From: Anthoceros angustus
Lineage: Eukaryota; Plantae; Anthocerotophyta
Length of the DNA: 64,000 nt
Assembly (NCBI GenBank): GCA_010909165.1
Contig: VJWM01000116.1
Span: forward strand, 682,001-746,000
Reading direction: 5' to 3'
Under the pieces are notes generated by a model, which saw nothing but the letters and a program-made list of their open reading frames with translations, did no database searches and was not told the DNA's origin. This document shows, piece by piece, positions 25,546 through 48,533 of the stretch; the stretch's first letter is position 1, and each line of letters starts with the position of its first letter. The position numbers and the translations under genes are program-made.

Positions 25546-28470
25546 GGGAACCAGCGTGCCACCTGCCTGGAGCTTGGAAGTGTGCTGACGTCCTTGTGTG
25601 TGTTTTGCTTCTCTTGTGGCTGGTGCTTGGCAGGCGGCTGGGGCTGGGGCTGGGGCTGCGCTTCCGGCGAGCGAGGCCGCGGCGTTGCGGAGGCTCAAGG
25701 CGTCGCTGCGTATCGGGAACGGGAGCTGGCCGTGGGGGCAGGCCAGGGAAGCGTGCGGGGCGTGGGCTGGGGTGGTGTGTGGGGAGGCACGTTGTGGGGA
25801 TTGGGCTGGCGGGGCTGAGCCTGGGAGGACAGGGGCAGCCGCTGCTGGATCAGAATGCGCTCCAGGCTCAAGTTTCTGGGGAGCTTCAATGCGTCGGGGT
25901 TTCGGCTGGCGGGGGAGGTGCCGGGGTGGCTGGGGAATGTCACCTCGCTGGAGGAGCTGGATTTCACCTCGTCGGACCTGGAGGGCAAGATTCCGGGCTC
26001 GCTCGGGGGGCTGTCGAGGCTGGCAATTCTGGCTTTGGGGGGGAACCGCCTCTCCGGGGGCATACCCGCCACCTTCGGGAATCTCTCCAGCCTGGCTCTG
26101 CTCAACCTGTCCGGGAACATGCTTACCGGCCGCATCCCGAGGACGCTGCGGGACCTGCCCAGGCTGCTTCTGCTGGACGTGTCTGGGAACAACCTCAGCG
26201 GGCCTATCCCCGGGTATGCAGTGGCGCGCCCTCTGCAGCAGCTGCTGCTCAGGAACAATTCTCTCACGGGGGCTATTCCCCGGTCCATCGGCCGGCTCGC
26301 ATCGCTGCGGATTTTGGATGTGGCTTTCAACGGCTTGTCTGGGGGGATTCCGTGGGAGATTGGGGGTTTGGGGAATCTCAGTGCGCTTCACGTGGAGGGG
26401 AATTTGTTGAACGACTCCATCCCTGCAAACATCACCGGGTTGCAGAGCCTGGTGGTGTTGGAGGCTTCCAGGAATGGGCTGTCCGGGATGCTGCCCGAGG
26501 GGATCGGGGATTTGAAGCAGCTGGAGAGGTTGCGGGTGGCGCACAATCTGCTGCTGGGGCCTCTTCCGGAGGGGCTGGCGGGCTTGGAGAAGCTCACGGT
26601 GTTGGATGTTTCGGATAATTTCTTTGAGGGTGTTTTGCCTGCCGGCTTGCTTTCTTCTGCTGATGTCGGGGGGAACTGCTTCAGCAATGGCACGGGGGGG
26701 CAGCAGCAGCAGCAGCTTTCTTCCTGCGCTGCGTTCTACTCGCGGCAAGGGCTCCAGTTTGGTGGAGCTGAACCCAGTGCGAGCCCGGCTTCCGGGCCCT
26801 CGGTTGGGCCCGTTCCGATTCTGATGCAGGGGGTCGGGGGGAGTGGCGCGGGGAGCCATGCCCGGTACAAGCTCATTGCCGCTGCTCTTTTGGGCGGGGT
26901 TGGGGGGCTGTTGCTGGTGCTTCTGGTTGGCTGGGTTGCTCTGTGTGTTCTCACGAGAGCCGGGACAGGAGGAGGAGCGGGAGTAGGTTCTGCTTACAGC
27001 CATGACTGTGCCGATGTTGCTGATGCTGGTAGAGCGGCTCCGGCTGCTCTAGATTTGGCTCACCGGCTGGGAGAGGCGTTTGCGTATGCCATCTTGGAGC
27101 AGGCGACGAGGAAGTTCCATGCTGGGAACTTGATAGTGGCGGGCCATTCGGGAGACCTCTACAGAGGATTGCTGGATGGACATTTAGACGTAGTGGTGAA
27201 GCGGATAGAGACGAGCAGGGTTAGAAGAGGCTCCTGTGCAGCAGAGCTTGATGTCATGTACAGGACTTCGCACATCAGGATAGTCTCGCTCCTAGGACAT
27301 TGCTTGGATAAGGAGGATGTCAAGTTCTTGGTTTACAGGTACATGCCGAATGGGGACCTGGCGTCCTCCCTACACAGGAAGAAGCTCGTCAGTCTGAGCC
27401 CTGGGGGAGCAGAGGTAGCGAACTCTCTAGATTGGATAACTAGGCTCAAGATTGCTATCGGTGTGGCAGAGGGGCTCACCTACCTGCACCACCAGTGCAA
27501 CCCTCCTCTCGTGCACAGGTGATGTCAACTTTCTTGTTGCTTCGTCTGCTGTCCTGCTAGGGTGTGTCAAAACCCTCTTCTCACACTCTCGTCCTCCTCT
27601 GCTTGTTCAGGGATGTTACATCAACCAGCATCTTGCTGGATGACAAGTATGAGGTCAGGATTGGGAGTTTGTGTGAAGTTCATTCGCAGGATGGAGACTC
27701 CCACCATCCCAGTATCATCTCACGTCTTCTTGGACTATCATTGTAAGCTTCCTGTCCTGTCAAGGTTGTGCATTGGCTAGATTTCTTGTTTCTTCTTCAT
27801 GCTGTGGCTGACTATTCAACATGTCCTCTGCAGTAATTCGGAGCAAGTAGAGCAAGGTGGATTCGTACCCGCGGCATCCACCTCACAAGATGTCTACAAC
27901 TTCGGGAAGGTTCTGCTGGAGCTAGTATCTGGACAGATCGGCATCAGCAGCTCCGCAGACTCCAGGGCAGACGCATGGCTAGAATGGGCTCTCCCTCTGG
28001 TCGACATCCACGACAGGGAACTGCTCCCCAGGCTCGTGGATCCCACCCTCACGGTGGACGAGGATCTGCTAGAGGAGGTCTGGGCCGTGGCCATCGTAGC
28101 CAAGCTCTGCCTCAACGTCAGGCCAAGCAAACGACCAAGCATGCGGCACGTTCTCAGAGCCTTAGAGAACCCGCACAAGGTGATCAGAGAGGACAACTTC
28201 AGGGAAACTCTCTCCCTGAGAACATCCTCTCACAGCTCCTGGAACGAGGCTCTCTTCGGCAGCTGGAGGAGCAATTTTTCTTCCCAACGCTTCGGCCCAT
28301 TGCCAGGGTCACTGCGGGAGGAGTACTCGCTCAAGAATGGAATTGCAGGAATTCAGCTGGCGACCGGGCCGGTCCCGCACTCCAGGCGGGTCTCCAGTGA
28401 GATCGTCCCCGAGCCTTTCAAAGAACGCTCTTTCCCGCCTCACCAGGGGGAACTCGAGCTTGTGCACTGA
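25503..28470 (+). CDS. LRR receptor-like kinase, LRR-XIV (At2g16250-like) atypical kinase; apparent frameshifts in the N-terminus
   Basis: Plant LRRs (LxxLxLSxNxLxGxIP) in 25855-26680, TM segment LIAAALLGGVGGLLLVLLVGWVAL, kinase GHSGDLYRG...VVVKR...HR/DVTSTSILLDDKYEVRIGSL, last exon DLLEEVWAVAIVAKLCLN...SSHSSWNEALFGSWR. Signal peptide and LRR-NT cap are spread over three frames at 25503-25870, so the start is inferred. Confidence 0.9.
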
Positions 28471-34559: not shown

Positions 34560-34840
34560 GACACATATATATGCACTATATATCGCTTTAAATCACTCGC
34601 CATTAGCAAACACATATGTATGCACTATATATCGCTTTAAATCACTCGCCATTAGCAAACACATTAGAACCCTTGCTGAAGATTTCTCCCCCGGGGTTGT
34701 TTTGACTTATTTTCAAAATACCAAATTAAAAAAAATTAGCAAACACATATGTATGCACTATATATCGCTTTAAATCACTCGCCATTAGCAAACACATATG
34801 TATGCACTATATATCGCTTTAAATCACTCACCATTAGCAA
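34560..34840. repeat. 49-bp unit, four copies in two pairs separated by a ~70-bp spacer
   Basis: AAACACATATGTATGCACTATATATCGCTTTAAATCACTCGCCATTAGC, near-identical copies. Confidence 0.9.
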
Positions 34841-35639
34841 GGAATCAACATTCCGATAATTCATATGTAGCACATACCAACATGCATATTTATAGACAAT
34901 GTATATCATTTGTTCATATTCTAACCACCAAAGTTAGATAACATGTAGAGATGTAGTATACGTAGCTATGCTATGATCTTGGTTATAGGCATTTGTTGTA
35001 ATTCTTTCTAATAGACAACATATATTACTTGTTCATATTCTAGCCAACATAATTAAATGACATCTAGAGATCTATTATACATGCCTATGCCGTTAGCTTT
35101 GTATATGCTTTTGTTATAATTATTTCTATGTATTATAAAGCCGCGTTGTCTCTAAAAAAAGAGGGACTACATTACACTAGTAGCCAATATAATAATTAAC
35201 GTTAGTCAGAAAAATGACTTTAATTTCTCAGTACACCCAATTTCCTGCCTACACATCGATACCCGATGGAAGTTAATGCTTGCCGTACCGATGCGGTACA
35301 TGCCGAGCCTTACGACGCCATTTCATTTCACCCTCCGCCTTACCGGTTCTCATTCTCCGTGAGTTGAACGCGGTCTTGCGAGCTTCGGGATTGCCGAAGA
35401 CAAAGCGACCGGTATCCCATCTGGCGGCTGGTTATCCGACTGTAATGAAAGAACCAGCGTTACGTAATCGTGCTACCACCGTTATCACGCGATGGTAAAC
35501 CATTCGTGCTTTCATGAACCATGCTTGGATCATGCGATAATAAACCATGCGCTTATCAGCCTGTAGAGTTTCCCGGTTACGATGAACTTAATGTGTTGAG
35601 AGCGGAAGGAACGCTAATGGAACGCTGGCTTTGAGAGCG

Positions 35640-36270
35640 CGTTCATCTTTTGTCTCGCCGTTTCCTCTACAAGAGTTGATTGCTTGTCTCGATGGAAAGC
35701 TTACAACAAGACGGACAAGCCGGTATAAAGCACGCTCGGTTTCAATGAAAGGTGACAGAGATATGAGCAAAGGAAGCCTTTGAAAGGCATGCCATCTATT
35801 TCTCTACCCGCTTTGTCCAGATGAGTCAAATGCTTTCTTATCATACTTCAATGAAAAGCTTACAACAAGACGGACAAGCTGGTATGAAGCATGCTAGGTT
35901 CCGATGAAAGAAGACGGAGATATGAGCGAAAGACGCATTTGAAGGCATGTCATCTTTTTGTCTACCCGCTTTATCCAGATGAGTCAAATGCTTTCTTATC
36001 AGTCTTTGATGGAGAGCTTACAACATGACGGACACGTCGGTGTGCAGCGCGCCTGGTTTCGATCAAAGATGAAGGAGATATGAACCGAAGAAGCTTTTGA
36101 AAGGCAGTTCACATTTTGTCTACCCGCTGTCTCCAGAAGAGTCAAATGCTCCCCTATCATACATCGATGAAAAGCTTACAACAAGACGGACAAGCGGTAT
36201 GCAGGCTACTTGGCTTCGATCAAGGACAACAGAGCTACTACGAGCGCCTTTGAAACAATGGTCACATTTT
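35640..36270. repeat. Diverged ~158-159-bp tandem repeat x4 inside the MULE
   Basis: Core TTACAACAWGACGGACA at ~35701, 35860, 36018 and 36176. Confidence 0.85.
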
Positions 36271-37943
36271 CCAAGTCACTACTTTTTCTTCTTCCTTGGC
36301 ACTTCATCAAACCCTCTCAACCGTTGCAAACTGTTTGAACCTTCATTCGCAAGCAGCTCTTGTACTGGCATTTGTGACCAAGGTCTCTCTCTCTGTGTTG
36401 TAAGTATCCGAATTTGATGTAAGATTTGTTCCATGATAGCAGCAATATCAAAACACAGATCCTTGTGATGGAAAGCAACCTCACAAATCTCCCTACATCC
36501 TGCTTCAATTGTGTCCATCCTTCGCTGCCGAGTTTGCTGGAAACGTGTCTTTGCACTTGTTGCCACCAAACTGCTGTCAGGGATGACAAGTTTCGAGTTT
36601 TCCTGGTCCTGTAGCCAATAGGACATTGCTAAAGTAGACGTTGCTGCCCCATCAGGGCAATATGCAGCAAGAACGGGAGTACACTCCTTCACACACTCCT
36701 TCATAGGTGCAGTTCCATCTTTGCAGACGGCAAGTTTTTGCTGAACCTTAATAATATGCTTGCATATGAACCCTTTCAGGCCCATAGGGCATGTGCACGT
36801 TGCCCATGGTGAATCTGCATGATCTATAACATACCAAGTAGACTCAATGGAGGAAGACAAGCGTTGAGCCGGCAATCCTCCCACCGTAGGGCATGGTAGA
36901 ATTCGAGTTCGGTGGAATCTCCGAGCTTGTAGAACCGCATGCCCCATCGAAACTCTTGTTTCTTATTTGAACATAGCCTCCTTCTTTAGTGAAGTCTGGT
37001 ACCAGTAATGTCGCTACCACAAAAACCAGGTGGTATAGTAACCAATCCAATGGCGTAGTAGCTTTGGAAAAGATACACGTTCTTTCAAGAAGCGGTGAAA
37101 TGCTTCCACCGCCGAGGTAGTATTCTGACATGAGGGAATAGCCGAGCATTACGGATCCACATTTGCAGCAACAATCATTCACTTGTCGGGGTTCACGAAG
37201 GTACAGAGCAAAAACATGAAGTGCGTGAAAATGAACTAACCCATTATGGAATCCGAGCTTTGAAATACGAAACGGGTTGTTTGACCTCCCACTTGGCATA
37301 GAATGCAGATAACATAGACCTTGCAGTGCTCAAACAAATGGCTGCTGTGGTTGCACCTTGGACATACATAATTCCACCTAGTTCTGCCCCAATTGCTTTC
37401 CGGTCATCCATGTCACGTACCTTGCTTAGCAGTTGACGTCACCAAGCTTTACGAACATGCCACAAACACAATATGATCAGCATGTTATGTGACCAAACCT
37501 GTTGGATAGCTGTTATCTCAGCTTGGCAATCATCCACGATGAAGGAGCTCGAATCCATGCGGTCACGTTTGAATACCGCAGGACAACGAAGCCATGGAAC
37601 CATCGAGGCAATTGTTGCCTCCTTGAAATCACCAAGCAACAGTACTCCGTTAAAATGAGGGTCAAACACCATCACAGTAAACAAATTGTACTTGTACTTG
37701 TTCATGCCGAATGTGGCATCCATAGCTAAAACACTATTATTTCCATACTGTACCATAGCCTGCAACATGAATGGGGTCTGAATTCCCAAGCAGAATGGTT
37801 TGTCATCAGGTGCCAAGTAAAATACCAGAGATGCATTTTGCGCAAGCCATATGGAAACAGAGGTGCAATTATCAACATGAAGCTTGTATTCACCTATATC
37901 CAACTGAGTAGCAATGTTCAAAACATCTTGCCGTAACATGTAG

Positions 37944-40900
37944 TGTGGACTACGGACTTCCCTTGGGGGTTAAGAAATAAGTAGGGTTTTGTTTTTTTCC
38001 GTAGGAGCGGAGGATAAAATAAGGCGGAAAAGGGAGGAATAAGCACGGATATACCGGATCGACCGGAGTATACCCGGAGTGGGCAACGTACCCGGACCTA
38101 CTATGGCGCCGGACTACGTCGGGTAGCAGGATAAGTCGGACCCACCTGTGTCCAAGCAGATAAGTACGCCAGGAAAGTAACTTAGAAGTTGAGCCGTGAG
38201 GACTGACCAGGCGGCGCCACGTGGGCCACAGGTGGAGGTCGGCATGCACCGCCAGACGAGCCGCATAAGGGTGTATTCACGCCCGCGCCACGAAGGCCGT
38301 AGTACGCGCGCAAGGCCGCAGGCGGAGGCGTAAGGTCGAGAATAAGCCATGCACCGCGCTACGGATGTGGAAGAGGCGCCTTCCGCCCAGTTACTCCAAG
38401 GCGTGGCGAAGGGAAGGTCATGCCACCGAGACACCGCAGCCTCTTGCGCCCGCAACCCGCTCGGGGCGCTATCTCTTTGAGCGCCCAGCACCTTCGAGCG
38501 TTTCACCGCTGCTGGAGCAGCGAACGCGAGGAGGGCGATCGTGCCGCCGAACTCGGCCAGCCAGCGACAAGGGAGAGAAGGCGATGGCACCCAAAAAGCT
38601 CGGAAGTTTGGGAGCCATGGAACCTCGTGGGCGCAACATTGTGACCCGCGCTATCCGGACTTTGGGCCCGGGCCGGGAAGCGGAGAATTAGTGAGGAGTG
38701 GCACTGGATGTGTTCCATGGTCCGACGCTCGGCTCACCACCGTCCGGAGTTCGCCGGAAGATGTTGGCGGCGGTCAACAAGGAGGTGCGGTCCAAGAACC
38801 TCCGGGAGGACCCGAGGCGATGGACCTTGGAGGTCCTGAGGGCGGCCTACAACCGCCCAAAGGAGGAAGAAGGGGGTGTGGTGCCGGAGCCCCTCAAGGC
38901 GAAGGGAAGATAGGGCCGCCGCGCGGCGAGGCTCGACGCAGAGGACCACCAACGGGTTGATATCCGACCGAGTACGAGTAAGGCGGTAGCCGGATCATTG
39001 TCCATTGAACTCGCCACCAAGGTGGATCACCTTGGTGATAACTCGCTGGTATTCCCGCATGCGCTACATGGGGAAGAGGGCGGACGGGAAGGATTATCTT
39101 CGCCTGCTTAGCGTGAGGCCCGCAAGCCTGGACCGAGAAGCCTCCACTGGGCCGCCCCATACCCGATCCATGTATGGGGACATTTCGAGCTCCTCAAGGA
39201 GGGTGAAGCTCGGGAGGCGGTGAGCGGCGCCCGAAAGGACCGAGGCCCCGCCAAGTGGAGCGGCAAGGGCGCCCGAGGTGAGGCCGATCAAGGCCAAGCG
39301 GACCGGGAGGCGGAGGCGGGAGGTCCGGACTCCATCGTGCAGGCGGACCCCTCACCACCTGTGGAAGTATGGGAGAAATCCCCGCCTCCTCCTCGGTGCC
39401 CCAACCGAGCCAAGCAGAGGCCTGACCCAATAGCCGCCCACCACCACAACCACCAAGGAGCTCACGACCCGTGAGGGAACCAAGAGACGCAAGATGCCAC
39501 AACGCGACCTCGACGGTGCCAAGACTTACCCCCGCCTACCTGAGTGGCAAGAAGGAGGAAGAAGGGGAAGGACGCCTGTGAGTGAGGACACCGGCAGCAC
39601 ACTCGAGCCGGGTCCTGCCTCCCGAAGGGGCAAAAGGGCTTGCTCCGGACCCCTCACCTCCTCCGAGCCCTGTGAGAAAAAGGGGCGAGAAGGGCTCGCG
39701 GCCAAAAGGGCCAAGGAGGGTGAAGCCCCGAGTCAAGACTCAGACCTAAGGGTCTGATTAGGTCCGAGAACCCACCGACTTACTCGGGCTGCGGTATGGA
39801 GGTCCCGGCGATCAGGAAATGCCGGCTCCCACTACGACTTTGTGGGAGCCTCACAGGGCGGCCGTGGAAGAAACACGGCGGTCCCTGCCACCGCCATGGA
39901 CAGATGCTTTGGGGTCTCGGGGATGGCCGAGAAGACCCGGAGGTAGAAGCCACCCGAGGCGCATGGTACTCCTCCGGGAGGCGAGGAGGAGGAGGAGGAG
40001 GAAGGCCAAGCTCGGCCAATTGAGGAAGGAAGCGGGAGGCGGCGGAGATGGAAGACCGCAAGGACCGACTAAATTCCTTCACCGGAGGAGCAAGTGCTAA
40101 GGAGGCCCCTGGGGCCGAGGACCTCCGCAGTGAGAGGGTAGCAGCAGAGGCTAAGAGGCCGGGCAAGTGAGCGGGCGGACCGCGAGGCGCCCGACCAGAC
40201 CAGAGCCGTCGAGAGCCTGTGTGAAGGTGGCCAAGGAGGCGGAAGCCAAGGCCGACCGCGATCACTATCGGCGTGATCGGGCCGGTGGAGGAGGCGGCCG
40301 GGTAGCCACGGCCAATCAAGGCCGAGCAGCAGAAGAGAGCACGACGAGCCGTGCAGAAACACTGAGGCCAGACCCGGAAATCGGGGACCCTGTGGCGCTG
40401 CAGGAGGTAGAAGCCACCGGGAGGCGGAGGCGGAGGCGACAAGAAGGACACCTTGGAGTTACAACCCAAGACGCTGAGCAGCAAGGGTTCTCAACGAGAG
40501 AATCCAAGACTTCGAGGAGATAGAGCGCCCACCGCCTCAAGATGGAGCAGGAGGCGCGGAGCAAGCGCCCAGCCTGTGAAGTTCGCGACAAGGAGATGGA
40601 GGATCTCGGACTCGGCTCCGTGAGGTGGAGCGTGTGGAGATGGAAGACCGCAAGGAGACCTTGGGCTGACTTCAAACTACCATTGAGAGGAATGGTAGTC
40701 TCAGGATGGTCGCGAACGCGAACGGAAATAGAGCGGCCCACCCTGCTGGGACGGAGGCAGACGGGCGATGGAACAGGAGGTGACGCCGCCGATGGAGAAG
40801 GGCTCGGGCCCGCAGCCGCGGAGGTTGCCCGTCTGAGAGGAGATGGCGAATGGTAATGGATGAGAAAGGAAACCGGAAGGCATAAGAAGCCGGTCCAGCT

Positions 40901-42487
40901 TGAGGAAGGCGAAGGGGAACGCGCTATGGCCGGTAAGCCGCGCCGGAGCAAGCGGAGTTGGAGTGGAGCAACAACGGCTGGAGGTGACCGAGGCTGCCTG
41001 CGAAGCCCCTCCCGCCTATCAAACTGGCGGGGAGGTGGTCCAAGGCAAGACGCTCACCCCGAGCACCTATGGCGGGGAGTACGGTGCCCGCACACGTGGA
41101 AGAGCAATTCAACAAGTGGATTCGGACTTTGCCTATTACCACCGAGCTCCCCGGGCGAGAGGCCTCTCACCACGGAGACCGGAAGGCCGGGAGGGAAGAA
41201 GGGCATGGGGACAAAGACGGGACTCTAGTGGCCCCTGCTTGGAGACGACGGCACGGGGAGAAGAGCCTCAAGAGGAGCGAGACGCAACGGACCCTGTGGT
41301 AAGTTCACCAACCCGCCTGGAGAAGGGAGGTGACGGCCCGAAAGGCGCAAGGAGGAGCCAACCCACCCAAGACAAGGGTCGGGGTAGGGATGAGGACCCA
41401 GCAAGACGAGGTCCATGACAAGGGGTCCGGAGCTTGGGGACCGGACTGAATAAGTTCGGACCACGAGGTCCGAACCTAGACGAGGCCGACCCACACCGAC
41501 TCGGGAAATAAGACTGACTCGGAGTTCACTGAGTCGAGACCGACCTCGAGGTCCGACTCCCAAGAAAGGAGGAGCCCCTCGACTTACGCTTAGGGGAGTG
41601 ATCGTGGCCCCACCGAGGGGACCCACGGGAGGCTGTGGGAGGATGACGTGGTAACGGCGGCCGACCGCCGAGCCCAACCCGGCTGTGATTCCGGAGAGAG
41701 GAGGTCGCCTCGCGGATCATCCGATTGCGCGCCGCAATCGCCGACGGAGATTGGACCACCAATCCCAAGGCGGAACCGGGACCTTCCCACCCCACCGCCG
41801 AAGGAGATAGGGGAGGAATAGGATGGTAGGCGGCCGATTAGGTATACCGAAATGGCCATCACCGTAATAGGTGTAATAAAGGCGCCGACTTGGGCGTAGT
41901 ATAAGAGGGTGCTCAATAAATCATCTTTCTCTTGGTGTTGATGCTGCCTGCGCACCTTTGTGTGTCTTCTTGCTAACGTGAGTCCCGAGTCACCGAAAGG
42001 TGCACGATACCCCGGAGAGATTGACTGTGGTCCCGTGACGGACCTAACGTGTTGTGGTGTGTGTGGGAGGACTGGGACCGTGCTCGCTGAGCCGCGCCCC
42101 CGAACGGACCGAACGCGGTGGAGCCGGAGGACTCGGGAGGCGTCTGAGCCGGACGGAGGAGGACTCGGGAGGCGAGGAGGTCGGTGTAACCAGCGTCTTT
42201 CCTAAGACCGATAAGTGTAGTGTGAGTGGAGAGAGGAACGACGAGGTGTGAGTGACGAACGTGAACGATACGGACGCGAACGGGTCCTTAAACGCTTGGC
42301 CACACCGTGTGAACGCGAGTAGTTAGACGTGAATCGATGAATGTGTGCGTTGGGCGAGCGGACGCAAGTAAGGCGAATCGCTCGAACGCCGCAAACGGAG
42401 CCTGTCATTCCCTTGGGAACGGACTCCTTCCTACAACAACACGGGATTGTGCGCGCCCGGCTGGCCGTCAGCGAAAGTCGCGCCACA
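37944..42487 (+). mobile_element. 4544-bp LTR-retrotransposon-derived insert (probable giant solo LTR)
   Basis: Begins TGTGG, ends CCACA, flanked by 5-bp TSD TGTAG (37939-37943, 42488-42492). Removing it restores the transposase frame RDDYMLRQDV. TATAAGA (41900) and AATAAA (41915) lie near the 3' end. No gag/RT/integrase motif or internal LTR pair seen. Confidence 0.85.
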
Positions 42488-42745
42488 TGTAGTCATCTCT
42501 AACGTGTTCGTATGGCTCTACTGAATTATTTACCTTCATGAACACAACATCCTTGTGTCGACGCATAATTTCATTGACGAACACCTTGCAGTACAAGCAG
42601 TGGCGGACCCACTCCTTCTTCTCATGAGAAAGCCAGGCTGCTCGAACATCTCGCGGAACCATTACAAATAGCAGCCCCCAAATTAGTATGATTGTCTTCA
42701 TACAAGCCAATCTCGGCAAACCATGGGCCACAATAATCGCTTTAC

Positions 42746-44950
42746 GAGATAGGCGCCTCCCTGCACGAAGATGGGCGGGGAGGCGGCGGAGCAGCACCGG
42801 ACCAGCCGAGGCCCGAAGCTCGCGACAAGGAGATGGAGGATCTCGGGACTCGGCTCCGTGAGGTGGAGCAGCGGGGAGATGGAAGACCCAGGAGACGGAG
42901 GCTGCGGCTTCAAACTACCATTGAGAGGAATGGTGATGCGGGGCGGCGTGTGGCAGAGCAGGAAATAAGCGGCTCCGGCTACATTGGCGGAGAGTCGATG
43001 CTGGCGATGGAGCAGGGGCGGGGCGTCGCCGAGATGGAGAAGAACTGGCGAAGCCCATGAGCGTTGCCCAATGCAGAGAGGAGATGGCGGAGTTAACGGC
43101 CGGAATGGAAGAGGCGGAAGCGAGACAAAACTGCTGGTCCGATTGAGGAAGGCGGAAGGAGCATGCGTTATGGTGGTAGTGGCGGGGCAGGCAGCGGGAG
43201 TTGGGCGGTGGAGCAACGGCGGTTGCGGGGAGGTGGCCAGGCGGCCTCGGCGTGAGCGGCTCCGGCTATCAAACTGGCGGGGAGGTGGTCCAACAAGCGG
43301 CAACACGCTCGAGCACCTATGGCGAAGGGGTATCGGTGCTCCGGGCACCGTGGAAGAGCAATTCAACAAGTGGATTCGGACTTTGCCTATTACCATCTGA
43401 GCTCACAGGCGGTAGAAGCCTCTCGCCCAGCAAATAAACGGACCTGGAAGGCTCGGAGGGGAAGAAGGGCATGGGGGCGGCCAGGGACTCTAGTGGCCTG
43501 TTTGGAGAGGCAGAGGGAGAAGAGCCTCAAGAGGCGAGACTAGCGGACCCCGAGTAAGTTCACACTTTGCTCGGGAGAAGGAGTGGCGGCCAGAAAGGGG
43601 CGCGGGGAGCCAACCCGACCCAAGACAAGGGTCGGGGTAGGGATGAGGACCTAGCGATGCAGGTCCACAGATAAAGGGGTCGGAGCTTGGGGACGGACCC
43701 GGAATAAGTTCGGACCACGAGGTCCGAACCCAGGCAGGCGGACCCAGTGGCCGGACTCGAGAAATAAGCGGACTCACAGGTTCGGACTCGGTCGAGGCCG
43801 GACCTCGAGGTCCGGACTTGGCGATGAGAGAGCCCCTTCGCTAGGGAAGCGGTGGCGGTGGCCCCAGGAGGACCACAGGAGGCGAGGAGGATGGCGTTGT
43901 AGCGGTCGTCGACCGCCAGCCGTGCGGAGTTCGGGAGGAGGGTCCGCCTCGCGGATCATCCGATTGGGTGCGCCATAGCTGTCGGGGCGGAGATTGGACC
44001 ACCAATCCCAAGGCGGAACCGGACCTTCCAGCCCACCCAGCGAAGGAGATAGGGGAGGAATAGGATGGTAGGCGGCCGATTAGGGTATCTTGGGCGGCCA
44101 TCGGCTCGAGAATAGGGGTGTAATAAAGGCCGACTTGGGCGTAGTATAAGAGGGTGCTCAATAAATCATCTTTCTCTTGGTGTTGATCGCGTTCTTGCAG
44201 ACCTTTGTGTGTCTTCTTGCTAACGTGAGTCTGAGTCAGCGGCGAGCGCAGCCCTCGGAGATTGATCAGGTCGGTGACGGACCTAACGTGTTGTGGTGTG
44301 TGCGGTGGCGTGGGACCGTGCTGCGTCGAGCGGCCCCAGCCGGGGCCGGACGTGTGATGGAGGGACTCGGAGGCGTCTGAGCCGGACGGAGGCGGCGAGC
44401 AGCGGAGGTCGGGGCGCGTAACCAGCTAGGCGATAAGGTGTGTGAGTGGAGAGAGGAGCGGGTGGAGGTGTGAGTGTGGCGAGCGTGAGCGATCTGGACT
44501 TGACAGGTCTTAAGCGTTTGGCCATCGGGCTGTCGGTGACGTTGCAGTAGATGAGCGGTAGTATGAATGTGCGTTGGGGGTGAGCGTAAGTAAGGCGAGA
44601 ATCGCTGAAGCAGCGCAAGCAGACTGTCATTCCCCAGGAGCGGACTCCTTCCTACAACAACACGGGATTGTCTTTCGGTGGCCGTCGTAGTCGCGCCACA
44701 TGTAGTCATCTCTAACGTGTTCGTATGGCTCTCTTGAATTATTTACCTTCATGAACACAACATCCTTGTCGGCATAATTTCATTGACGAACACCTTGCGG
44801 TACAAGCGTGGCGGACCACTCCTTCTTCTCATGAGAAAGCTGCCGGTGCTTTCGAACATCATGAACCATTACAAATAGCACCCCAAATTAGTATGATTGT
44901 CTTCATACAAGCCAATCTCGACAAACCATGGGCCACAATAGCACTTTACA
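42746..44950. repeat. Indel-rich tandem duplicate of ~40515-42745 (3' part of the insert plus adjacent transposase)
   Basis: Repeats GTGGAAGAGCAATTCAACAAGTGGATTCGGAC, the TATA/AATAAA block and the same CGCCACA/TGTAGTCATC junction at ~44700. Confidence 0.88.
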
Positions 44951-46329
44951 CGAAAGTTAGCTTGACATCCATGCTTCACTCTCTCCTCCCAATTTTGCAC
45001 TTCTTGTTTGAACACTTAAGAGGCCTTGAGGACTAGATTGCCGAAAATCCTCGGGCCCATATGAACCCGATGCGCGCGTTGAGCGTGCAGTCAGTTCCTC
45101 ACATGACAGTATAAGTAAGGCTACCCTAAATCCCACAAGTCACTGTCCTGTTCAGTGAGTGCCACATGTAAGATAAGGTGAAGTGAAGACTACCAGTTAA
45201 AGTCAACGGAGAAAAATCAGGATGGTACCTCGTGTAGGAAAGGGCTGTGTGGACAGACTGTGTTATAGGTTTCAAGAGGTTGTTGGGTCCCTTTGAATCC
45301 TTCTTATAGAAATTTGTTGGATGCTCTTTGTTTGCGCTCATACCAGCTACAAAGTCCACCACTCTGTCCATCAAGATGTGAGCAACACGAATCATCCGCT
45401 GATGCCCATGTGCCCATTTCGAATGGCTCTGAGAGGAGCACACCCACTCCAAATATGCAGCTGAGAAGTGTCCAGGTTTAGGCAATTGCACCACGAATGG
45501 TGTATCCCGAGGCCGCTCCTCAAAATTTTTGCACTCGGTACGATCCATGTACACTAAGCTCAATCAAAGCTGCCCTTGACAAGTAAGATCATCGGCCTAA
45601 TCTGAACCCCTTTGGTCGGTATGGCGAAACTTTGAACATAGCAGACGTGAATTTGGGCAATTGCTTGAATGAACATTAGGGTTAATGGTGGTTGCCACGA
45701 AGCTAGGTATTGTAAGCGTAATTGGTGCATGGTTTACTATCGCATGATGCCCGCACCGCCACACCGCGCGGAATAGCCTGTTGGTGTACACAACGGGTTC
45801 AGCTCACGGACGGAGGATGGGAACTGGTAAGGCCGTGTCGTTGGGCGAAACGGAATGGCTTTTGGTACCAGCCGTAAGGCCTGGCACAACCATACCGCAC
45901 GGGCTGTGGCAGGCATTAACTTCCATCGGGTATCAATGTGTAGGCCAATTTCCTTATGTGAGTTCTAACACACACAACCAGCTATATTATAATAATAAAG
46001 ATAATCATCCGACCCATTCTTGTTATTGGGGATAAGCCGCAATTTCCATCCTTGCTTCAGAAATATGTTTCCCAACGCTTTGAGTCTGAAGAATTTCCAC
46101 CGCTTCGAAAGTGGTAACAAAGTAAAAATCTCGAAGTGGTAAATTCGCTGGCTCGCGATTTCTTTGCCTTTATCCAGTGGATGAAATGGGGTTAACTGTT
46201 TTAACTTGGGAGAGAGTAAGCTATGTAGGTCGAAACCCTGGGAACGCTTGAGGTCGCCGCATCGACAGGAAGGAGAAAGGACTTCGTGGTGGTGGCTGAG
46301 GACAAGGGAGCTGCCATCGGTGGGGCGGC

Positions 46330-48533
46330 ATGGCGTACGATAGCTATGGCGGAGGGCGGGGGGATTATGCAGGCGGCTACGACGATACCTACGATGATCG
46401 TCCCGAGTTCCGGGATAGCTACCGGGACATTCAGCAGCAGGATCCTGGGTTCGACAGCCCCAACTACGTGCCGGATGTGGTGAAAACCTTTGTGACCTAT
46501 CTCTACAGGCACATCCGGGAGAAGAATACCTACGAGATTCATCAGATGTACGAGGGCAGCTTCCAGAAGCTGAGCGAGCGCATGTTCAAGCAGTCCTACT
46601 GGCCCTCCGTGGAGGCCATAGCTCCGCTGGTGGACAATGACCATGTCTTTTGCCTGCTTTACCGAGAGATGTGGTTCCGCCACGTCTATGCCAGGCTCTC
46701 TCCCACCCTGGAGCAGAGATGCGAGTCCTGGGACAATTACTGCGGTCTCTTCACTGTCGTGCTGCATGGCAATGTCAACATGCAGCTGCCTAACCAGTGG
46801 CTGTGGGATATGGTAGACGAGTTCATATACCAGTTCCAGTCCTTCTGCCAGTACCGCGCCAAGCTTAAGAACAAGACCGAGCATGAGCTGCAGCTGCTGA
46901 GACAGTACGAGGAGGTAATGTTGTTGATGTGGCTTTTTTGCGGCACTAGGTCAGTTTGGTTCGTGATGAACTCCAAGTCGCAGTCTCAGCCTTGTGTCTG
47001 CTGTTCAGGTGTGGAACGTCTACGCAGTTCTGAACTACCTGCAGGCTTTGATTGACAAGTCCATGATCCTCCAAGTTTTGGAGGATGAAAAGGACGGCCC
47101 TGGCCCTTTCACTATAAACGATGGATATGACTACGAGGGAGTTGGCTCCAACGTGCTCCGGGTTTTGGGATATTTCAGTATCATTGGCCTTCTACGAGTG
47201 CACTGTCTGCTTGGGGATTACCAGAGTGGTCTTCGCTATTTGGCCCCAATAGACTTGGGTCAGTCTAGCGTGTGGAACAACAACATTGGGTCCCACATCA
47301 CCACAATTTACTACTATGGGTTTGCCAACATGATGCTAAGACGGTGGGGATAAAATGTGTTTCGTGCTTGCTGTCGTCCCTGCCTGTGCATGCTTGCTTA
47401 CAGTCTCGTGTTATTTTGTCTGCAGCTACACAGATGCAATCAGGGCTTTCAATCAGATATTGCTGTATCTGATCAAGACGAAGCAGTTTCACCAACGCTT
47501 ATCACAGGCTGACCAGATTCACAAGAAAAACGAGCAGATGTATGCCTTACTGGCAATCTGCCTTTCCCTTTCGCCTCATGGTAAGCTTGTCGAAGAGAAT
47601 GTGAACAACCAGCTCAGAGAGAAGTACGCTGAGAAGATGTTAAGGATGCAGAGAAGTGATGAGACTATTTACGATGAGCTCTTTTCATATGCTTGCCCCA
47701 AGTTCATTACCCCCTCTCCACCTAATTACGATGAGCCGCTGGTGAATTACAACCAGGTTAGTGACACGTCTTTTAGGCCATTCCTGTGACCCCTGTTGTT
47801 TCTCGATTTTCTTTTTCCAGTAGAATGTTTCATCCATGTGCTGTTTGGTATCCAGGATGCGTACAGGTTGCAGTTAAAGCTTTTCCTGTCTGAAGTACGG
47901 CAGCAGCAACTGCTTCCAAGTATTCGTAGCTATCTTAAGCTCTACACCACCATTTCCATTGCCAAATTGGCATCTTTCATGGAAATCGATGAACCCACTC
48001 TGAGGTTTGCAATTGCACGCTGCCTTGCATGACATTCGAATTGTGGTATGCTATGATGAAGTTCACTATCTTGGATTTGTGCTTGTTGAAGGGCTCGCTA
48101 AAGGTAGTTGTTGGGTTGACAGGATGGCATTGCTGACCTACAAACATAAGACACACGTAATCGACGACGATGGCAGTATCTTATCCACTGCGGATGTGGA
48201 CTTCTATATAGATGAGGTAGGGCTTCATGAGTTTTGAGTTTCAAGATTTGCTGTCCCTGTTGCGAGTCCAGTTGCCGAAGCTTTGGTCTTCCTTCTGTTT
48301 GCAGGACATGGTCCACATCGCCGATCTGAAAGTGACCAAGCGTTTTGGTGATATGTTCATTCGGCATATTGCAAAGGTATCCTCTTTGCTGGCTAATGCA
48401 TGTTGGTGCTGTACATCTTGAATTCGTGCCCCTTGTGGACCTTTATACATGAGTCATGTGCCAATGGTTGCAGTGTGAGGAGATAGTGGAGGATGTTGGA
48501 CGAATTCGCTTATCGGAGACAGCAGCATTTTGA
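46330..48533 (+). CDS. EIF3L: Eukaryotic translation initiation factor 3 subunit L, multi-exon
   Basis: [20 protein letters not shown]...[32 protein letters not shown]...[65 protein letters not shown]. Last exon [19 protein letters not shown] (TGA 48531-48533). Confidence 0.96.

Follow-up and report, generated by a model that had tools for sequence, protein, structure and literature searches.

A decayed Mutator-like transposon in Anthoceros angustus and its kinship with angiosperm SWIM genes

Mutator elements and their domestication into the FAR1/FRS and MUSTANG genes are well known (PMC4948706, PMC6446971). The locus described here raises the question of whether another group of conserved plant genes, the SWIM-type genes represented in angiosperms by At1g60560, has relatives that still carry the form of a transposon. 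It lies in a stretch of 64,000 nucleotides from Anthoceros angustus (Anthocerotophyta; assembly GCA_010909165.1, contig VJWM01000116.1, positions 682,001 to 746,000 of the forward strand), which is called the window hereafter and whose first letter is position 1 of all coordinates below. The element in question occupies 35247-45945 of the window (10.7 kb), and its ends, its target-site duplication (TSD) and its catalytic domain make it a member of the Mutator superfamily. We consider it highly likely that the element is the dead remnant of a Mutator-like cut-and-paste transposon that was once autonomous, and a mobile-form relative of transposase genes that appear to have been domesticated.

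Termini and transposase gene of the element

The element lies between two copies of the 9-bp sequence CAATTTCCT, at 35238-35246 on the left and 45946-45954 on the right, which are identical in all nine positions and immediately adjoin the element termini; by simple arithmetic, chance would give 9/9 identity at a fixed position with a probability of ~4e-6. The left terminal inverted repeat (TIR; 35247-35372, plus strand, 126 bp), in which the outermost 38 bp are best kept, opens with GCCTACAC at 35247, and the reverse complement of GCCTACAC closes the element at 45945, where the right TIR ends (45794-45945, minus strand, 152 bp). The outer 38 nt of both termini are 95% complementary. In a local alignment with gaps allowed, the 126 bp on the left and the 152 bp on the right share 108 identical positions, with numerous indels between the two repeats; the alignment score was 105, compared with 19.5 ± 2.6 for shuffled sequences and a shuffle maximum of 31. 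The window contains exactly two occurrences of a 33-nt terminal pattern, and none of 100 shuffles contained it. Mutator elements are characterized by a TSD of about 9 bp (8-11), by TIRs that are often 100 bp or longer, the first two being hallmarks of the superfamily, and by a DDE transposase with a MULE domain in which the second aspartate is followed by a C(2)H motif; this element has all three features. A preliminary description of the locus, made from the letters of the DNA, had reported long imperfect TIRs and a perfect 9-bp TSD, and both are borne out. Inside the left terminus there is also a subterminal tandem repeat at 35689-36201 (unstranded; 158-bp unit, 3.2 copies, 81% matches).

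The transposase would have been the product of a single gene on the minus strand, with a zinc finger of the WRKY/GCM1-like type at the N terminus, followed by an RNase H-like DDE core that contains the C(2)H motif and, at the C terminus, by a SWIM finger. The pieces of this gene were searched, and later placed in trees, one by one and never as a joined protein. When compared with a family profile built from 49 relatives, seven collinear minus-strand pieces span profile positions 12-767 of 854, and the profile searches found no other match to the transposase family elsewhere in the window. The N-terminal family signature (VQ.P...FS...IRVAHI..RVVDFVAG...PTNF) is located at 45207-45506 and matches the family profile at 8.3e-12; it is followed at 44887-44985 by a zinc-finger strand, now decayed, from the N-terminal DNA-binding domain (7e-4) and by a linker piece, copy A, that leads from the DNA-binding domain to the core at 42496-42745 (profile match 42644-42489, 2.6e-5). 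The MULE DDE core is located at 37442-37943 and gives the strongest family-profile match (37948-37442, 2.3e-58). Directly behind the peptide LWHVRKAW, inside a conserved stretch, the translation and the profile place an in-frame TGA stop (37439-37441), beyond which the match continues at 37256-37438 (profile positions 404-459, 5.4e-6). The piece with the third catalytic residue, in the motif VEAFHRFLK, is found at 37074-37127 in a frame that differs from that of the core (4e-4), and the C-terminal piece with the SWIM finger and the tail is found at 36291-36857 (profile positions 574-767, 7.5e-12), the SWIM zinc finger itself lying at ~36744-36803. All of these features are on the minus strand.

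Pfam matches in the window pieces comprise the MULE domain (PF10551, 9.3e-8) and the ZSWIM1-3 RNaseH-like domain (PF21056, 1.2e-6), both in the core, and the SWIM finger (PF04434, 1.7e-5). The catalytic signature is kept: MDATFG and IVDDC contain the two aspartates and VEAFHRFLK the glutamate, and the C(2)H motif is present as CLWH. The minus-strand peptides on which the preliminary description relied (RVVDFVAG..ANKEHPTNF, YGPED, RDD, FCLGIQT, DATFGMNKYKY, FIVDD and LWHVRKAW) were all recovered. No second, mudrB-like gene was seen in the element.

The N-terminal domain is predicted to be a WRKY/GCM1-like zinc finger. For a fern relative, this region was modelled with AlphaFold, and the model, with a mean pLDDT (predicted local distance difference test) of 78, found WRKY DNA-binding domains as its best, though weak, matches in the PDB, the top Foldseek match being 7z0u (E 0.01, probability 0.99, template-modelling score by target 0.59). 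A sequence search of solved structures with the family profile gave no match. The DNA-binding models of the FAR1 (PF03101) and MuDR (PF03108) families found no match, either in the window pieces, scanned at E values up to 1, or among 35 long relatives (threshold 0.001) and seven N-terminal parts (threshold 10). Together, the WRKY-like model match and the failure of these two Pfam models suggest the usual Mutator layout in a lineage that current Pfam DNA-binding models miss.

Relatives among conserved plant SWIM genes

We searched the 166-aa core exhaustively against 1.84 billion representative proteins, which yielded 454 matches at an E value of 0.001 or better. The best matches were proteins of the fern Adiantum, with 45% identity and an E value of 4.5e-29, followed by proteins of Cryptomeria, of the liverwort Riccia, and angiosperm proteins named 'SWIM-type'. 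P0020, the representative of At1g60560, was match number 20 (5e-16, ~31% identity in the core); its group is 72-88% conserved across angiosperms, and P0277, which is named 'like AT1G60560', is 73% identical to P0020. A profile made only from 119 angiosperm orthologues of At1g60560 matches three window pieces in order, the N-terminal signature at 5.8e-5, the core at 4.8e-26 and the SWIM finger at 4.6e-5, with profile positions 11-97, 235-392 and 568-606, respectively. The At1g60560-type proteins (P0020, P0277 and about 640 relatives) thus agree with the window transposase in the collinear series of N-terminal signature, core and SWIM finger, and the window transposase, as judged by its sequence, is homologous to them along its whole length. 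Pfam already tags proteins of this type with a transposase-derived domain.

The family contains two further conserved groups in angiosperms. In one of them (the P0026 group) the annotation 'zinc ion binding' recurs, and since AT4G13970 is described by the same phrase (PMC6265505), this group is probably the At4g13970 type, the shared annotation phrase being the sole basis of the assignment. The other consists of proteins of about 690 aa (P0441 and its relatives). Identity within the At1g60560 group and within the 'zinc ion binding' group is 62-88%. In the alignment, the N-terminal signature VQ.PP..FS...IP..R..DF..GE...PT.F is common to the window and to all three angiosperm groups. The 'zinc ion binding' and ~690-aa groups belong to the same family as the window transposase; unlike the element, they are conserved, host-like genes.

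The C(2)H motif separates some of these proteins. Its histidine is replaced by arginine in the At1g60560 group, in the 'zinc ion binding' group and in one Amborella protein, all with the D, D and E residues kept, whereas the histidine is retained in the window, in the transposon-like members and in the third angiosperm group. Compared with the At1g60560-type genes, which are conserved and carry the arginine, the window copy has TIRs and a TSD, keeps CLWH and is decayed, and it stands outside the domesticated orthogroups proper. The genomic settings differ as well. The At1g60560-like gene of Hibiscus, 2.6 kb in length, has a proteasome-lid gene on one side and an ESCRT-II gene on the other, and no flanking inverted repeats were found beside it.

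By identity, the nearest relatives of the window transposase are fern proteins, namely P0001, P0002 and P0011 of Adiantum and the P0010 group, with 38-45% identity in the core. In the P0010 group (P0010 and P0435-P0439, from Adiantum and Ceratopteris), each species has a single member and conservation is 72-89%; unlike the element in the window, this group resembles a conserved single gene, and it may represent a distinct branch of host genes in ferns within the transposase family. At a greater distance, PF21056 was found in 27 of the 35 long relatives, and in a protein atlas the clusters nearest by features were those of MULE and ZSWIM1-3. Through its match to PF21056, the window core resembles the animal proteins ZSWIM1 and ZSWIM3, a resemblance at the level of the domain in a different kingdom and not orthology.

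Two side observations were made on members of the family. Green-algal relatives from Ostreococcus tauri and marine metagenomes (P0091 and P0112) are 1,420 aa long and have the transposase joined to a Ulp1 (Peptidase_C48) protease domain; algal proteins of this type occur as many near-identical metagenomic copies. A Pseudomonas phage protein of 37 aa falls in the same 90% cluster (that of P0008) as transposase-like proteins of Cryptomeria, which is probably an artefact of clustering.

The window family shares with MuDR (MURA), Jittery, FAR1/FHY3 and MUSTANG the 9-bp duplication, the long TIRs, the C(2)H motif and an order of domains in which a DDE core stands between a SWIM finger and an N-terminal domain that is predicted to be WRKY-like. 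It differs from MuDR and FAR1 in its N-terminal domain, which the Pfam models of both families miss, and in the element no mudrB-like gene accompanies the transposase. The preliminary description had placed the layout with At4g13970 and At1g60560 rather than with MuDR or FAR1. This is upheld for At1g60560 by the profile of its 119 orthologues, and the lack of detected FAR1 and MuDR DNA-binding domains is consistent with the distinction from those families; for At4g13970, the link consists of the annotation phrase only.

An ordinary membership in the MuDR or FAR1/Jittery clades, with the likeness to At1g60560 reduced to general Mutator similarity, is in our judgement improbable. The overall layout is indeed that of MuDR and FAR1, and UniRef labels one member of the family, P0060, 'Protein FAR1-RELATED SEQUENCE'. 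However, no match to PF03101 or PF03108 was found in the window pieces, the long relatives or the N-terminal parts at the thresholds given above, the N-terminal signature is shared with all three angiosperm groups, and the At1g60560 representative ranks twentieth among matches that number just 454 in 1.84 billion. FAR1 genes number 18,744 in 80 species (PMC8599713); because they are so numerous and the matches so few, most FAR1 genes would seem to fail to match the window core.

Pack-MULE formation, that is, the capture of a host SWIM gene by a non-autonomous Mutator element, has a different starting point. Mutator elements often capture fragments of host genes, and the closest relatives in ferns have the look of conserved single genes. 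Nevertheless, the protein has the D, D, E and C(2)H signature and the MULE domain of Pfam, its reading frame spans the element between the subterminal regions and is collinear with full-length relatives, and it keeps the histidine that the At1g60560 and 'zinc ion binding' groups have lost. Relatives in Cryptomeria, in Riccia and in a species related to Anthoceros angustus are, moreover, multi-copy or flanked by inverted repeats, as described below. A captured host gene is accordingly a very improbable source, even more so than an ordinary MuDR or FAR1 transposase. The least credible reading takes the TIRs and the flanking 9-mer as chance matches around unrelated decayed coding fragments. The window does hold one pair of ends only, but the shuffles lacked the terminal pattern, the alignment score of 105 far exceeded the shuffle maximum, the 9/9 match stands at a fixed position, and the same terminus recurs in other sequencing runs with other flanks; we regard chance as ruled out by the shuffles, the score and the recurring terminus.

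Movement of the family and decay of the window copy

Contigs from sequencing runs (X1, X2, X3 and X6), which show the presence of a sequence and not its absence, were compared with the element. Run X6 comes from a related species, in which the gene that flanks the element is 92-96% alike. About 100 contigs of this run cover the right end of the element, and five of them end exactly at 45945 and then run on into unlike sequences. The summed contig depth in X6 is 24-283 over the element, exceeding 100 across most of its right half, compared with 12.6 over the flanking gene. Runs X3 and X1 also contain contigs of the repeat end with other flanks; over X6, X3 and X1 together, the contigs end at the terminus or within ~25 bp of it (45920-45945). 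Because the contigs of X6, X3 and X1 share one terminus but differ in their flanks, the transposon family has moved. In Cryptomeria, copies at least 90% identical are found on three chromosomes, and in Riccia the relative is enclosed by inverted repeats of 44 nt with 98% matches. As a side observation, the inverted repeats of Riccia sorocarpa L001 (9635-9678 and 15917-15960) hold AGTTAATGC ~26 nt from the end, and the window terminal repeat carries this same 9-mer, AGTTAATGC, at about the same distance from its end; the agreement may be fortuitous or reflect a common binding site.

The copy in the window is dead. Its reading frame is shifted within the DNA-binding domain, and zinc ligands have been lost, with GCQANF in place of the family's GCxCHF and ICNGS in place of CHG. 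The preliminary view of a mobile, free-living relative of a domesticated gene family does not hold for this decayed copy; related copies with other flanks exist in related species.

Two larger events interrupt the gene. A GC-rich, long terminal repeat (LTR)-like insertion of 4,547 bp at 37944-42490 (unstranded) has TGTGG...CCACA ends and is flanked by a 5-bp duplication, TGTAG, at 37939-37943 and 42491-42495; with TG...CA ends, short inverted termini and a 5-bp TSD, it has the termini and duplication expected of an LTR retrotransposon, as a solo LTR. Excision of the insertion in silico recovers the reading ..HVRDDYM|LRQDV.., and within the window neither an internal gag-pol region nor a further copy was found except the tandem duplicate. 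This duplicate is the second unit of a ~2.2-kb tandem duplication (~42746-44950, unstranded), which repeats the 3' part of the insertion together with a piece of the transposase; the duplication spans the right part of the LTR-like insertion and 250 bp of the transposase. The transposase piece in the duplicate unit, copy B, is located at 44689-44950 on the minus strand and is frameshifted. This internal layout had been given in advance as an insertion at 37944-42492 and a duplicate at 42746-44950, and was right within a few bases. The two units are uneven, in that the transposase piece is 97-98% identical between them and the GC-rich LTR-like part is ~75% identical with many indels (37944-42490 compared with 42746-44688).

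The following history can be proposed. The N-terminal domain would have bound the terminal repeats, and, by the known mechanism of the superfamily, a 9-bp staggered cut at integration would have produced the duplication of CAATTTCCT. Afterwards, or already in a parent copy, an LTR-type element entered the open reading frame, a 2.2-kb piece across the insertion junction was later duplicated in tandem, and the frame and zinc ligands were ruined by point mutations. For the annotation of the genome, 10.7 kb are thereby explained by a nest of three events, first the transposon, then the LTR-like insertion and last the duplication in tandem.

The element is situated in an AT-rich region, and its right end lies ~295 bp upstream of an eIF3L-like transcript. 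The corresponding gene, like eIF3 subunit L, spans 46240-47757 on the plus strand and was named from the look of its translation. In run X2, whose label as RNA is a guess, a spliced contig starts at 46240 and has two introns, 46913-47006 and 47343-47424, both of the GT..AG type; no contig of this run was found over the element. To the left, the nearest long reading frame is a GC-rich gene resembling a leucine-rich repeat receptor-like kinase (25855-28470, plus strand), likewise named from the look of its translation. The AT-rich left flank contains a 49-bp tandem repeat at 34561-34840 (6 copies, 65% matches) and a pair of 92-nt direct repeats at 34892-35102.

The site itself may be polymorphic. 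Run X1 is the best holder of the flank, with one differing letter in 1,847, and its flank contig stops at 45953/45954; no contig of X1 at 80% likeness was found over 44951-45235 or 45331-45805, the unique inner parts of the element. This pattern, together with the perfect 9-bp duplication, is what would be seen if the insertion were recent and still varying among accessions, a defective copy having been moved by transposase from an intact copy elsewhere. Contig holes prove nothing, however, and the X1 pattern may be an assembly hole; no contig joins the two flanks, the break coincides with the outer border of the duplication, a position that fits poorly with a filled site and with an empty one alike, and numerous indels distinguish the terminal repeats from each other. 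On balance, we think a recent insertion rather unlikely, although it deserves more credence than the alternatives weighed above.

Placement in plants and meaning for the SWIM genes

In a quick tree that includes the window pieces separately, the N-terminal and core pieces fall inside the fern clade, with a value of 97 in the Shimodaira-Hasegawa-like approximate likelihood ratio test (SH-aLRT), and the C-terminal piece adjoins this clade; the likelihood likewise favours a grouping of the window with the fern sequences. In a full-length quick tree made without the window, the order from the outside in is algal and Riccia branches, ferns, Cryptomeria, Amborella, and the three angiosperm groups, which form one clade (SH-aLRT 99).

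Several results weigh against our interpretation of the element. The full-length tree follows the plant phylogeny. Because it does so, and because the ferns have single members of the P0010 group with 72-89% conservation, host genes rather than transposons may be among the nearest relatives. In a careful tree of the core only, the window stands in an unsupported polytomy, and approximately unbiased (AU) tests reject none of three groupings of the window, the p values being 0.39 for a clade with ferns, 0.30 for one with the angiosperm groups and 0.32 for one with the transposon-like clade of Riccia. Since the AU tests reject no grouping, the window transposase is kin of the angiosperm genes and not their demonstrated sister. 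The separation of the window family from the MuDR, FAR1, MUSTANG and Jittery clades rests on domain tests and on the ranking of the search. As for the transposon itself, the repeat ends in the window number two, that is, one pair; the evidence for multiple sites comes from sequencing runs and not from the assembly, and copies in the same genome are shown indirectly, by three variant contigs in X1. A clean 9-bp duplication was looked for beside the Riccia relative and not found. The fold match of the N-terminal domain to WRKY is weak, with no Foldseek E value below 0.001.

With these points taken into account, we still hold that the element is very probably a dead, once-autonomous Mutator-like transposon of the kind set out at the beginning. 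Its transposase would belong to a green-plant Mutator lineage that also holds three conserved angiosperm SWIM orthogroups lacking terminal repeats, and this shared lineage would make the element a mobile-form relative of genes that look domesticated. The kinship of the transposase with the At1g60560-type genes, in turn, supports the view that those genes are tamed transposases.

FAR1 and MUSTANG are the precedents for the domestication of Mutator transposases (PMC4948706). Our literature searches for a link between SWIM genes and MULEs returned FAR1 and MUSTANG work only, and no paper describing a third domestication of this kind was found; a full-text search of the available library met At1g60560 or At4g13970 in two papers only, each time in passing, and the supplements of a study on transposon-derived Arabidopsis genes list neither of them. 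We see the evidence as evenly balanced on whether the At1g60560 group, the 'zinc ion binding' group (probably of the At4g13970 type) and the third group represent a third large and ancient Mutator domestication in plants beside FAR1/FRS and MUSTANG, with a C(2)H motif that has lost its histidine in two groups as its mark, and with mobile relatives bearing TIRs and TSDs that survive, and perhaps move, in non-seed plants. A relative with TIRs and a TSD is direct evidence that the ancestor of these conserved, little-studied angiosperm SWIM genes was a Mutator transposase, and the element offers a natural comparison for the changes that came with domestication, such as the replacement of the C(2)H histidine by arginine while D, D and E were kept.

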